Source of the DNA: Perna viridis
Taxonomy: Eukaryota
Direction of reading: 5' to 3'
Assembly (NCBI GenBank): GCA_037379345.1
Contig: CM074511.1
Coordinates: forward strand, 42,538,862-42,602,861
DNA length: 64,000 bases
Shown: piece after piece, positions 29,401-60,600 of the stretch
Layout of the letters: every line of letters starts with the position of its first letter
Position numbering within the stretch: position 1 is the first letter of the stretch
Notes under the pieces: generated by a model
Seen by the model: only the letters and a program-made list of their open reading frames with translations
Told to the model about the DNA's origin: nothing
Database searches by the model: none
Translations under genes and position numbers: made by a program

Positions 29401-32400
29401 ACAATAACGCTAAAAGATATCACATAGGGGTACACCGTATTTGCATGGGGCTGTGTGTAACCTCTGATCGTCTAATGGTTTATCTGTTCTTGTGCTGTAC
29501 ATCTTCAGTCATACACAACACAAGCCTTGATGACAACACTGTATACTTTGTTTGACTTTGTCTTGTGAGCATGGTACATCGCTGCCAAGATTCTTTTACG
29601 CAATCTAATTGTGCAAAGTCAAGAAGACAGAGCTTCACTTTTTCACTTTAGTTGCTTTGAGCCTTAGCTTTAACATCATATGTATATCTACTAAGGAGTA
29701 GCAAGGACTTTAAAATCTATCAGGAATCTAAAATGTCTTTGACTTTCCGTAAGTACTTAGTTTGTGTGTGCTTGCTACCTACCATAACCACTTCTAGAAT
29801 CCCACTTAGAACCCCCTTCAAAGTTTCATTTATTGTGGAAATATTAAGAGCATGGAAGCGTGAAGTGTATGGCTGCCACTTAGATGAAAGATTGAGACCC
29901 TTTCGTTAATGACCCTTAATAAGTTTCAGACCTGCTGATGTCAGATTAAATTTATCTAATCCTAAGTTCCAGGAATGTTGATAATTCAACAATTTATCTT
30001 TATCTTTTTGCAACTTTTTATTCACTGAAATGTAATCCAACCCTTCTGCAATATACCTGAGGAGCAAAAAATGCACTTCCTTTTGCAATTAAAAAAATAA
30101 GAACTTTCATTTTTATAAATGATAAATAGAAGTATTAATGAAATTTCTACTCATTCAATAAATAAATAAATAAATAATAAGAATAGCACAATTTCAGGTT
30201 TAAATTCCCAAATGTTTTTTTTTTTCAGAAGGCATGGCCATATCCAAGTGAGCTACCCTATCCTAAGGTATCGATTAGTTCATTCTAAAGCATGAGGTTT
30301 TTTTTTTTTTTTTCGTTTGTTTGTTCTTTTTTCCAGGGTCAAACTAGCAAAGCACTGCTCTCCTGTAGTTGGTTGAAATTGGGCCAAATAAGTCAAATAA
30401 GGTCATTTGGTCCCCTTCAACCAGCTGTAGCTAGCACTACAAACGACAAACAGATCTGTGCATGGCAGTCATAACCATATAACACCAAATTTGTGCTTAA
30501 TGCATGGATACAAGCATTAGATTTCTGGACCCTATCGAATGACCAAGTATTAATACATGTTTAAACATAAAATGAACAAATGTTGCTCACACTGTAATAA
30601 CATTTATTTCTTATGTACAGTTATTAAGGCTGAGCAGTTAGAGCTCATTAACTTGAATTATTTCAATGCCAACATGTTACCTAATTATCAAGGTTATCAT
30701 ACTATACTCCTAAATAACAGTCAGGGCATGTATTTCAATCTGTATATTGGATTAGGAATAATTGTGGAAATAAAGAAATATCTAAACATATGGAATTAAG
30801 TGTGTGTCAACGACAAAAGAATAATCACTAGCATGTGTTTATAGTTAGTGGATTCCTGTGGCAAATAAGTATGCCATTTGTTACCATGATTCAGCACCAA
30901 ATTAGTTACTGTGTGAGACATCTATTTTTAGAAACAGACTGGAATTCCCCTTCACATACAAATGCATTGCCTATGTCATGAGGTACACAAAAGGATTTTT
31001 ACGTTGTAAATCTATAACATTGTCCTTCGAGTTGTTAGTCTTTTGATTTTATACAAATGTACTTCCTCAACTAAACAACTTCAAACATCCTTAGTGAGTC
31101 TTCTATGGCACATATTTCAGAGGTTCAAATTAGTGCAAGTCCAAAACTAAAAGCTTTCTGACCTAGGACTTTTGAAATTTCATTTATCTAGATCCTGGAC
31201 TTTCCTCTCTTTTTCAATGATAAAGGACTTTTGTTTTTCCTTAAGCAGACCACTGATTTGATACTGGAAAAAGCCTAGGACCTTTCACTAAGGAACTCTC
31301 AGATTTTTTCCTGAGAATGTGAATGGCAGAATGCATACTTCTGGCAATAAAGTGTGTATGTATTATCTTTGGGAAACTAATTACATGACATAATTACACA
31401 GGACAAGCATACGGTATGTCTTCTTACATAGACCTCCCACTGTGAAATATGACAACCAGTACTAATTAACATTTCAACATTTTCATTAATGCCATTTAAT
31501 CTGTGAGATCATCAATTTAAAATTTTCAATGGTATACAAAGTAATAAAAAAAGTCAGTTATAGAAACCATTAAGTTCTGCATGGTAGCTGGTTTCAACTT
31601 ATAGAAACAGAGATCTATTATTTAATTCAAACTTAGCACCTATCTAAAAAGTGGAAATGACAAATGAAATTTTCTCTGATATCAGCAGTCATTTCCAGAA
31701 GTAAGCATTCTTTTGCTGACCCACCTGAAGCAATTTCATGACAAGCAAATCAAAGCCAAACATAGCTTATCCCCTGGGTCACCTAATTTTTAATGCTTTT
31801 CTTTCTGCTCCACACATCATAAGGGCAAGTCAACTTCATTTCAAGCCAGTGCAGGTCTGGCAAAACTTGCCCACTTGACCAGTTTGATAAATGTTCTTAT
31901 TTCTACCACTGAGGAAGTTAAATAAGTTTCAAAATACTGAATTCACTGCCCAAGATTCCAAAATATCATTCATCCTATTGAAATGATTTTTTTCCTTTGG
32001 ATTAGGGATTTTCTATAAATGTAAGATGGTAATGAATGTCAACTCTTTAGATTCCAGTGACCTTGGTTTGCCACATGGTTCAGTATGTACCAATTACCTT
32101 GAATTGCCCCTAAGTGCCAAATGGTGGGCCACTTACCTTGAGTTACCCTTAGTGCAATATAGCATACCACTTACCTTCGCTTACAATCAAGTGCAACATG
32201 GTGTACCACTTCTCTTGTGTTGCCCCTAAGTGCAGCACTCCATGTACCTTAGTTTGTCCCTTAGTGCAGCATGGTGTACCACTTACCTTGAGTTGCCCCT
32301 AAATGTACTACTTACCTACCTATGGTTGCCCCTCAATGCACCATGGAGTACCACTTACCTTAGGTTGTCCCTCAGAGTAGCATGGTGTACCACTTACCAA

Positions 32401-57600: not shown

Positions 57601-60600
57601 ATGCAGAGATCAATTAATGGTCTTTTCAAATAGAGAAAGCATCATTGAGTGATATTTTATTGTTAGATGGTTGGGCTTTTGACATGCATGTTTCTGATTT
57701 TTCCCATTTTGCCTGATTCTTACAAACACTTAATCTTAAATAATAGGATTGTACACTTAAATAATTCCATTTTTTAGGATAATTATAGTATCAAAGAATA
57801 AAGCTCCAATGGTGATCTGTTCTACATTACCATATAACAAAAAGTAAGTTAAATCAGTGGATTATCTGTTCTACATTACCATACAACAAAAAGTAAGTTA
57901 AATCAATGGTGATCTGTTCTACACTACCATACAATAAATAGTAAGATAAATCAATGGTGATCTGTTCTACACTACCATACAACAAAAAGTAAGTTAAACC
58001 AATGGTGATCTGGTCTACACTACCATACAACAAAAAGTAAGTTTAACCAATGGTGATCTGTTCTAAATTACCATAAAACAATAAGTAAGTTAAATCAATG
58101 GTGATCTGTTCTACACAACCATACAACAAAAAGTAAGTGAAACCAATATTGTTCTGTTCTACACAACCATACAACAAAAAGTAAGTTAAATCAGTGGATT
58201 ATCTGTTCTACATTACCATACAATAAATAGTAAGATAAGTCAATGGTGATCTGTTCTACACTACCATACAACAAAAAGTAAGTTAAACCAATGGTGATCT
58301 GGTCTACACTACCATACAACAAAAAGTAAGTTAAACCGATGGTGATCTGGTCTACATTACCACACAACAAAAAGTAAGTTAAACTGATGGTGATCTGTTC
58401 TATACAACCATACAACAAAGAGTAATTTAAACCAATGTTGATCTGTTCTACACAACCATACAACAAAAAGTAAGTTAAATCAATGGTGATCTGTTCTACA
58501 TTACCATACAACAAAAAGTAAGTTAAATCAATGGTGATTTGTTCTGCACTACCATACAACAAAAAGAAAGTTGAATCAATGGATTATCTGTTCTTCACAA
58601 CCATACAACAAAAAGAAAATTAAATCAATGGTGATCTGTTCTTCATTACCATACAATGAAAAGTAAGTTAAATCAATGGTGATCTGTTCTACATTACCAT
58701 ACAACAAAAAGTAATTTAAATCAATGGTGATCTGTTCTACATCACCATACAACAATAAGTAAGTTAAACCAATGGTAATCTGTTCTAAATTACCATACAA
58801 CAAAAAGTAAGTTAAACCATAGTTTTATAGCAAAAAATTAATCAAATTAGTTGTGAAGAGTTATTATCTAAATATAATATGAATCATGATAAAGCAGTCA
58901 TCCTGTTGTTTTTATTCACACTGTTTTTTAGTCATCACTGTTAAGGATATTGATATTTATACATTCTAATTTTTGACACATGTGGTTTTATAGTAATAAT
59001 GATTAATACTTGTGATTTAGAGCAGAGTATGAGGAAATTAAGATAACAAGAACAAGAAACATGTCAGGGACATCACATGAAGGACTGCTGTACCTGGGTC
59101 TGCATGCTGTAGGACTTGTAGAGGAGGGGCAGGTACACTTTCATTGTACATTGGAAAAATTGCAACACATGTTTTCATATGAACCTAAACATATGAAAAA
59201 ACATTATAAGGTTTTTTTCCGGTGTTTTAAAAACATATGATAAACATGTTACATTTTTCCTGTGTACTCTAGTTCTTATCAATATTTATGACTTTCATAA
59301 ATCATTAAGATTTTGTTGTTTAGAAGCAGCTTCACTGCGCAGGAACAGAAAGTAATCTAATTGAAAAGAAAGTCACAAATAAAAGAAAAATGAATAAGCA
59401 AGTTTTCTGGGAGAATTAATGATACAGTACTTACAGTACTTTATATGGTAATTGTCATGGTAACCACTGGAGAAAAAAAATCTCTGAGAAAGAAGACTCC
59501 TCATTCATCCTGATGATACCACTCATAACCTCTTTAGTTTGTTCTGTCAAATCTTATCACAATACTTCTAACAGTATTTAGTTTAACATTTATTATCTGA
59601 ATGTCAACAGGCTATAACAAATAAAATAACTCATTTGTATGTATATTGCCTGTGTTTATGCCTATAAGACGAAAAGTAAATACATCACGGAAGATTTTCT
59701 CTTGATGAGCAAATAAACAAGAAGCTTTATACTAAACAGTTTTTATATTTTGTATTATTCAATGCTTTGGCATATGCCAAGGATTCATAAACTCTACTGA
59801 TGATTATGCTTTAAATGATTCTCTTACTGTTCTCAGTCATTGATGTATTTTATAACGGTGCTAGTGAATGACTTATTGTGGATGCTAGTAGATATGATAA
59901 AACTAGAACATATTTCAACTTGCAACCAATAACACTTATCTATTTATAGGAGGTATCCTACGGCTAGTTTTATATTTATAGTATGTATTGTACACTGTAC
60001 AGTGAGATATCTATTTATAGAATGTATTGTACAGTGAGTTTTCTATTCATAAGAAGTATTTTACAGTGAATTTTCTATTTATTGGATATATCATACAAAG
60101 CCTTATCTATTTATCGGATGTATCATACATTGCCTTATCTATTTATAGGATGTATCATACAGTGCCTTATCTATTTGTAGGATGTATCATACAGTGAGTT
60201 ATTAGTTCCATCCCATGGCAGGTACTTACACAGAGCTCAGTCTGAGAAGGGGCTACAGCTACTTACAGAGCATGCACATCCTCTTACTACAGGTACTTAT
60301 CAAGCTTGCCTCAAAATAACTCCTTATTGATGTTTATTATGTGCATTTGTTAGCTGCACAAGGATTATTTATGAAATTTTGATTTGAAATTTTGAAAAGC
60401 CCAGCAGTCAATTTCACAGAAAGTATAAATTAAATCGTAGTGATGATGTCACTATGATATTTTCTATTATGATGCCGTAGTTTAAATTTACACTTATCAA
60501 CCTCTAGACCTTTCACTCTTGAAAGTAATTTTGAACCCCTGTGCAATGTAGAAATTTGAGTGCACATTGCATAATGAGGAAGTTTGTTAGAGGAAGTCGA

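Follow-up and report, generated by a model that had tools for sequence, protein, structure and literature searches.

Tandem repeats that span an exon-intron boundary are known from amphioxus as mirages, a term taken from Canestro et al. 2002 on Adh3, as cited in two later papers (PMC3087553, PMC3902484). Ebner et al. describe them at both the 5' and 3' boundaries of amphioxus globin genes, with units of 10-160 bp, AG/GT signals retained in many copies, and normal splicing; these repeats turn over as minisatellites whilst the boundary copies are left out of concerted evolution, and the genomic mechanism generating them was called unclear (PMC3087553). The amphioxus cases include Adh3 and the globins BflGb6/BflGb9, to which PGBD5 and troponin C were added by Pavelitz et al. 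2013 (PMC3902484). Here, we analyse a stretch of 64,000 nucleotides of the bivalve Perna viridis (contig CM074511.1 of assembly GCA_037379345.1, positions 42,538,862 to 42,602,861, forward strand; hereafter the window), in which four tandem arrays, A1 to A4, sit on splice junctions of two genes. These arrays have the structure by which mirage minisatellites are defined; the repeat type is already known, and these members of it are new.

Like the amphioxus mirages, A1-A4 consist of minisatellite-size, head-to-tail units laid across a genuine exon-intron boundary, splice signal included. The comparison is one of a cephalochordate with a bivalve mollusc, and we found no paper describing mirage-type repeats in molluscs. 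In contrast to amphioxus, the cases here number hundreds genome-wide, with a measured excess at consensus donors. Length and somatic instability has been shown for the amphioxus Adh3 mirage; of the arrays here, A4 is spanned in a second sample and has the same length there.

A human parallel is the variable number tandem repeat (VNTR) in intron 7 of F7, in which the first 37-bp element lies across the exon-intron boundary and the identical pseudo-donors are functional yet never compete, the most upstream site being chosen by 5'-to-3' scanning (Borensztajn et al. 2006, PMC1557585). Here too an authentic donor is followed by identical pseudo-donors, the first A3 donor being used and the rest silent at the RNA depth available. 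However, F7 has 5-8 repeats in one array of one gene, against up to 21 copies, four arrays and two genes here; mutagenesis has shown that its pseudo-sites work once the real site is lost, whereas the spare sites here are known from sequence and, in A3 and A4, from RNA; and the F7 model is silent on acceptor-side arrays, of which A4 is one. The Rogers model of intron gain, discussed in PMC3087553, likewise rests on a tandem duplication, there of an exon segment with AGGT, that creates extra splice signals inside a gene, and in the view of Ebner et al. mirages could supply raw material for gains of this kind (PMC3087553). Unlike in that model, no new intron or exon is found here, the duplicated exon parts lie outside the mRNA, and there is no frame bias. 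Lastly, ordinary intronic or transposon-internal bivalve minisatellites, such as that at 8602-9070 of the window, resemble A1-A4 in size range, higher-order periods and decay, but their units do not derive from a host exon and contain no splice junction. The initial annotation of this window could match the arrays to no named system; mirage minisatellites (PMC3087553, PMC3902484) and the F7 IVS7 VNTR (PMC1557585) do match. We consider it very probable that A1-A4 are mirage-type minisatellites, in which a junction-spanning duplication was enlarged by ordinary amplification and the spare sites are spliced out.

Anatomy, host genes and splicing of the arrays

Tandem Repeats Finder (TRF) returned 25 rows over the 64-kb window, and only six loci have units of more than 20 bp in at least about four copies. 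The arrays were read, then walked copy by copy starting at the genuine junction.

32055..32619, minus strand: A1, 14 copies of a 39-bp unit plus a degenerate 15th reaching about 32055 (TRF row 32086-32623, 39 bp x14.1, 74% matches)
44061..44855, minus strand: A2, 11 copies of a 72-bp unit (TRF row 44061-44864, 72 bp x11.2, 95% matches; periods 72, 215, 287)
57807..58816, plus strand: A3, 21 copies of a 48-bp unit (TRF row 57807-58816, 48 bp x21, 88% matches)
59935..60196, plus strand: A4, 8 copies of a 32-bp unit, running upstream from the exon (TRF row 59934-60202, 32 bp x8.2, 76% matches)
8602-9070: fifth array, 21/42 bp, AT-rich (TRF)
24213-24457: sixth array, small and composite, with 42-bp units (about 4) followed by 37-bp units (2.7) (TRF)

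TRF agrees with the four arrays first reported by the initial annotation in place and size (39 bp x about 15, 72 x 11, 48 x about 21 and 32 x about 8). That annotation's count of four junction arrays out of five was also fair: the fifth, flanked by perfect 24-nt inverted repeats (8574-8597 and 9067-9090), looks like the internal tandem repeat of an element resembling a miniature inverted-repeat transposable element (MITE) and not like a junction array, and the small sixth array is our addition. Likewise, its description of the units as an exon end, a splice site and a few intron bases, at three donors and one acceptor in two genes on opposite strands, is borne out by the unit walks, by Pfam and by a transcript contig (run X12).

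In A1, the unit (a slash marks the splice site) is CCATGCTGCACTTAGGGGTAACCCAAG/GTAAGTGGTACA, edge ..CCCAAG/GTAAGTGGTACA, with 27 nt of exon, the last of a Mind-bomb ankyrin exon, and 12 nt of intron, namely the donor GTAAGT and six more bases. Its genuine junction lies in the first copy (32619-32581, with the G of GT at 32592), GGTAAGT is kept in 11 of 14 copies, and the unit walk shows identity to the exon copy falling with distance from 100% to about 72%. A2 repeats ..GGCATGTTTGAG/GTAGGTTAAGAGTAGGA, edge ..TTTGAG/GTAGGT.., formed by the last 55 nt of a Mind-bomb SH3-repeat exon and 17 nt of intron (GTAGGT and 11 more bases); the genuine donor is in the first copy (44855-44784, G of GT at 44800), the copies are 94-97% identical, and GAG/GTAGGT is present in 11/11, hence in all 10 spare copies. 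The A3 unit, ..CCATATAACAAAAA/GTAAGTTAAAT with the edge ..CAAAAA/GTAAGT.., combines the last 37 nt of a 66-nt exon with 11 nt of intron (GTAAGT and five more bases), and retains GTAAGT in 17 of its 21 copies. About 83% of the 1177-nt intron at 57844-59020 is occupied by A3, whose unit has no other copy in the genome, the sole match being a dispersed repeat upstream of the exon. The donor positions -3 to +6 are identical in A1 copies 2-5 and in most A3 copies, and higher-order periods are found in A2 (three units, by TRF and the unit walk) and A3 (seven units, 337 bp).

A4 is the acceptor array: 16 nt of intron end (..TATTTGTAG) precede the first 16 nt of the next exon, giving CCTTATCTATTTGTAG/GATGTATCATACAGTG with the edge ..TTTGTAG/GATG... 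The genuine acceptor is in the last copy (60165-60196), and identity drops with upstream distance. In all four arrays, as had been claimed, the row of copies ends on the genuine exon and extends solely into the intron; the units have the splice consensus alone in common, as judged by eye on the unit walks without cross-array alignment.

2288..51358, minus strand: complete Mind-bomb (MIB) E3 ubiquitin ligase gene, host of A1 and A2 (Pfam, and exons read)
32593..32744, minus strand: exon seeding A1 (Pfam Ank, Ank_2, Ank_4 and Ank_5 matches)
44801..44934, minus strand: exon seeding A2 (Pfam SH3_15 profile positions 2-31 of 67, stopping at the donor)
54165..60292, plus strand: spliced gene, host of A3 and A4 (public RNA)
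57778..57843, plus strand: exon seeding A3, 66 nt, donor at 57844 used (X12 contig, depth arithmetic)
60181..60292, plus strand: exon seeding A4, DVSYSELLVPSHGRYLHRAQSEKGLQLLTEHAHPLTT, own acceptor, the last of the array, used (X12 contig)

The minus-strand host is a complete Mind bomb E3 ligase gene running from ~51.4 to 2.3 kb. Its stop-free stretches carry, in Pfam order, MIB_HERC2, ZZ, MIB_HERC2, SH3_15 (the Mind bomb SH3 repeat) twice and ankyrin repeats; downstream ankyrin and RING exons follow at 12.2, 9.7, 7.0 and 2.4 kb, the RING-type exons at 7.0 and 2.4 kb being identified by reading, without a Pfam run. A1 opens a 20-kb intron (32592 down to about 12275), and the A2 intron splits an SH3_15 domain, the remainder of which lies in the next exon near 43.7 kb.

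For the plus-strand gene, and thus for A3 and A4, RNA data were available from the raw runs X21 and X22 and from the X12 transcript contig. The exons seen in RNA are at about 55460-55545, 55910-56000, 57778-57843, 59021-59132 and 60181-60292; by eye they share one open frame. Junctions were placed from contig pieces and depth arithmetic. The 2908-nt X12 contig aligned at 55456-55543, 55908-55998, 59021-59130 and 60179-60292, and its remaining piece is placed on 57778-57843 because of a 68-letter gap and a mean word depth of 3.55 in the bin 57801-58000 (16.5 x 43/200). Since exons and introns here both end in AG, the aligner's cuts are displaced by two bases; after correction for this shift the contig runs from 55910-56000 to 57778-57843, then to 59021-59132 and to 60181-60292. 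Because the contig joins 57843 to 59021 and 59132 to 60181, both the donor copied in A3 and the acceptor copied in A4 are genuine sites that are used. The identity of this gene is another matter: no Pfam family was found for three exon stretches, nor any Atlas match, leaving the CABLES label (Cdk5 and Abl enzyme substrate) of the initial annotation unconfirmed by either; the cyclin part expected of a CABLES protein would fall beyond the window.

Are the spare sites used? Exon coverage in X21 and X22 is roughly 3-10x, on the strand expected for plus-strand RNA, and at this depth both runs show zero RNA over 58001-59000 (A3 copies 5-21) and over 59201-60000. In the bin with the A3 exon end, X22 gives 1.63 x 200 = 326 bases over 43 exon bases, which is the exon depth alone; the bin with the A4 exon start (60001-60200) holds 198 bases over 20 exon bases, again the exon depth alone. 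The X12 contig, which at the A3 exon end covers 57801-57843 only, takes the first donor there and the last acceptor in A4. Spare A3 and A4 sites are thus silent at shallow RNA depth, in the sense of not seen. Use of a spare donor would lead to an immediate stop, AG/G TAA in A1, GAG/GTA GGT TAA in A2 and AA/G TAA in A3, whilst the neighbouring spare acceptor of A4 would add 32 nt and shift the frame; RNAs using spare sites would accordingly be targets of nonsense-mediated decay (NMD), and could be under-seen. The bank of spare or decoy splice sites proposed in the initial annotation stands as far as the sites are intact (A1 11/14, A2 11/11, A3 17/21); no use of them appears in the available RNA.

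An excess of arrays at splice junctions

The number of junctions in the window, about 55, is taken from the initial annotation and fits a complete MIB gene plus at least five exons of the second gene. A unit of length u then has a chance of 55u/64000, i.e. 2-6%, of spanning one of them, and the probability that at least four of six units do so is about 2e-5. Under the looser criterion that a finished array of 0.3-1 kb merely overlaps a junction, this probability becomes 0.27; the window significance holds because the units themselves are built from the junction. As the window was singled out post hoc, a genome-wide test was sought.

The window's own assembly (723 Mb, 46 contigs) was searched with the pattern X-N{20,50}-X-N{20,50}-X, and distinct arrays were counted on contig C1 (72.6 Mb), which each listing covered fully; raw match totals (e.g. 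360 vs 140) are dominated by a few huge arrays and were left unused. On C1, the donor word AGGTAAGT gave 16 arrays with at least three tandem words, A1 among them, against 2 for the reversed-letter control TGAATGGA and 2 and 1 for the seeded random permutations GTAATAGG and GATAGGAT; 16 against 5 summed over these three composition-matched controls corresponds to a binomial p of about 1e-6. With another donor word, AGGTGAGT, of a composition half as frequent, 7 arrays were counted. The acceptor word TTTTCAGG gave 5, against 1-2 for controls; several of its matches come from a dispersed satellite, and none could be checked against exons. The earlier claim that junction arrays exceed chance therefore holds both in the window (2e-5) and on C1 (16 and 7 arrays vs 2, 2 and 1 for the controls).

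The satellite that confounds the acceptor counts has a unit of 32-33 bp (GTTTTCAGGTT.GGTTTAGACA.GT...), and the acceptor-word search met it at the following loci.

C2:39054890, C2:48513601, C2:69277510: dispersed satellite
C4:8012525, C4:19332242, C4:45189972: dispersed satellite

To see where donor arrays lie, we fetched 17 of them: the 15 AGGTAAGT arrays remaining on C1 and two from C2. The first donor stands at the array start in 13 of the 17, and an open frame of at least 35 codons runs into it in 10, against a fraction of 0.28 for random positions within these same sequences (p=0.007). The first donor also marks the exact end of a Pfam domain for ILEI, Mago_nashi, SARAF and Peptidase_C1, with a weak case for Thioredoxin_7. 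At least five of the 17 fetched arrays are at exon ends, and probably at least ten. If seeding were uniform, less than one junction array would be expected against at least ten seen, given ~1,200 perfect-consensus donors on C1, a number assumed from general gene and intron numbers and not measured. The junction excess is real; at consensus donors we estimate it as roughly tenfold, uncertain by ~3x either way.

It is very improbable that we are dealing with ordinary intronic minisatellites that abut exons in short-intron genes, or with misassembly. The looser criterion and the post hoc choice of window speak for the former, since touching one of ~55 junctions would then suffice; units built from the junction itself are far rarer, and the genome-wide counts of 16 vs 1-2 point the same way. 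As for the assembly, a collapsed or stuttered origin is unlikely because the copies have diverged (74-95% matches) and are not identical. Moreover, in X4, which comes from a different sample and study, a single 5174-nt contig covers 58790-61000 without a gap, giving A4 the same length; A3 is present in X4 as separate pieces, not spanned.

In the largest donor array seen, at locus L022 (G000:C1:68673098-68676353), a 58-bp unit, ..GACAGAAAAG/GTAAGTCTGACC.., is repeated 57 times with 98% identity; an open frame of 55 codons, rich in Ser, Arg and His, precedes it.

Origin and persistence of the arrays

We infer the DNA mechanism by which these arrays are born and grow. Birth would require a short tandem duplication that happens to span an exon-intron junction, which replication slippage and unequal sister-chromatid or allelic exchange could then amplify; growth by slippage or unequal exchange is suggested by the three-unit and seven-unit higher-order periods of A2 and A3. 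Only expansions on the intron side would survive, the exon-side copy being held by selection on protein and splice site, and this selection would explain why the genuine exon is always the terminal copy. At the RNA level, the spliceosome would pick the exon-proximal site, be it the most upstream donor, as in F7, or the last acceptor, and the rest would leave with the intron, the protein remaining unchanged.

Several points weigh against this account. The exon depth of about 3-10x is shallow, and NMD would conceal spare-site transcripts; both the RNA and the read evidence are confined to A3 and A4. A neutral by-product model alone predicts no tenfold junction excess. Furthermore, the spare copies of A1 preserve their donor motif better than the remainder of the unit (0.915 vs 0.772; rank 2 of 39 windows), which could be a hint of selection on spare donors; no such conservation excess is found in A2, A3, A4 or the fetched arrays, the latter being biased by the search word.

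What, then, causes the excess? The initial annotation had offered a simpler filter, whereby junction-spanning duplications are the only exon duplications to leave the protein intact. This does not explain the excess: a filter only removes arrays, and because arrays deep in introns are equally harmless, survival cannot yield more of them at junctions. We lean towards a raised rate of birth or regrowth at junctions, rather than selection for function; such a raised rate is itself a tentative proposal, in which the conserved exon copy possibly serves as a permanent template.

A specific form of this idea extends the mirage account by naming a cause: junctions, and strong donors above all, may be true hot spots of minisatellite birth and regrowth. 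Here, co-transcriptional splicing (pausing, R-loops, transcription-replication conflicts) would lead to nicks or fork stalling, with duplications born and regrown from the exon side. We regard this as possible, though doubtful. Three observations favour it: the roughly tenfold excess of consensus-donor arrays on C1; the occurrence of several junction arrays in single genes, two per gene in the window and more at loci L014, L019 and L024; and the position of the youngest, most similar copies beside the exon in some arrays. Neighbour-copy similarity is indeed highest beside the exon, decaying with distance, in A1, A4, L017 and L019b (rho -0.6 to -0.94), a polarity expected either if new copies are born at the junction or if the selected exon copy converts its neighbours. 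That second option counts against the hot spot, as gene conversion would also yield polarity, and so do the lack of polarity in most arrays, the homogenised ones among them, its reversal in L016, the variable position of the breakpoints relative to the splice site (3-48 nt of intron) and the lack of direct evidence for any DNA lesion.

As a general rule, polarity was rejected, being strong in four arrays only and opposite in L016. A fixed breakpoint was ruled out: the intron part measures 11-17 nt in the donor units of the window but 3-48 nt in 13 further arrays. A reading-frame bias was also discarded; 39, 72 and 48 are divisible by 3, yet overall this is so for 7 of 21 array periods, which is the chance level. 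Divisibility at chance, together with the 3-48 nt of intron, means that there is no sign of use in mRNA.

The loci with more than one array are varied. L014 (895-2102, in gene orientation) has an acceptor-type array of 57 bp x22 ending ..TCTCTTCAG/GTTAAC; at L019:1525-1755 the donor of a Cys-rich coding exon is the very start of a 30-bp x8 array; and in L024 the same 46-bp donor unit forms two blocks (2960-3181 and 3990-4130) separated by 800 bp. In L016, donor-type arrays at 2232-2461 and 2779-3154 lie on opposite strands within 600 bp, each after a short open frame; at most one of them is likely to be a real junction, and the second is the array with reversed polarity.

Alternatively, the arrays might be retained because tandem U1 sites benefit the host gene, a variant we find less likely than a hot spot. 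More broadly, tandem U1 sites or copies of an exon-end enhancer could aid the gene, perhaps through stronger exon recognition, less premature polyadenylation in AT-rich introns, or tuning via unproductive splicing and NMD. A selected function of this kind is unlikely on balance, even though the donor motif stands out as best kept within the spare A1 units, all 11 A2 copies have a perfect donor, and the excess over chance requires some cause. The conservation signal is limited to one array, and acceptor arrays exist, which fall outside U1-based ideas; unit sequences have nothing in common, sizes and breakpoints are arbitrary, and distal copies decay. Nor is any benefit known in amphioxus or human F7 (PMC3087553, PMC1557585).

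An RNA-templated origin, with unspliced pre-mRNA reverse-transcribed repeatedly or in a rolling fashion and the product then integrated, is the least probable of these explanations, and hardly credible. Nothing specific speaks for it beyond the association with transcribed junctions, whilst intron and exon bases stand in genomic order, and poly(A), target-site duplications and retroelement sequence are all lacking. The three- and seven-unit higher-order periods and the polar decay are those of unequal exchange at the DNA level, and the A3 unit occurs nowhere else in the genome.

Taken singly, mirage loci are harmless curiosities of a described type; it is their number that matters. Hundreds of junction-derived minisatellites offer a way to test what favours junctions, a question that dates from the first work on amphioxus; the candidate causes are a splicing- or transcription-linked mutational bias, persistence for longer, and selection. 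If junctions really were hot spots, hundreds of mirage arrays would form a natural record of a DNA process coupled to transcription or splicing. The arrays are also natural experiments in splice choice, with up to 20 identical competing sites in a row, of which the exon-proximal one appears to win. More practically, gene annotation and splice-aware mapping in bivalves face many perfect false splice sites beside the real ones.

Neighbouring features of the window

Just upstream of the 66-nt exon, at 56600-57800, lies a very high-copy repeat, whose summed word depth is in the millions for one DNA run; RNA reads in their hundreds fall on either strand of it and show numerous variant letters and loose ends. 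The repeat contains a 142-codon open frame on the minus strand (56748-57173), and its segment 57700-57744 (44 bases) matches at least 27 other places in the genome.

Within the 20-kb MIB intron that opens with A1, Rfam identifies mir-1 at 19796-19873 (plus strand, 68 bits) and mir-133 at 30360-30433 (plus strand, 60 bits), both antisense to the host gene. Between the two sits the sixth array (24213-24457), whose unit has TTA/GTAAGA on the plus strand; exon evidence or a junction was looked for at this array and none was seen. Vertebrate MIB1 likewise hosts miR-1-2 and miR-133a-1, and the placement of mir-1 and mir-133 in a MIB intron would be an old microsynteny.

Lastly, at 60401-60818 the mates of RNA reads are oriented the other way, and a 223-nt contig covers 60596-60818; together they suggest a minus-strand transcript inside the intron that follows the exon at 60181-60292.

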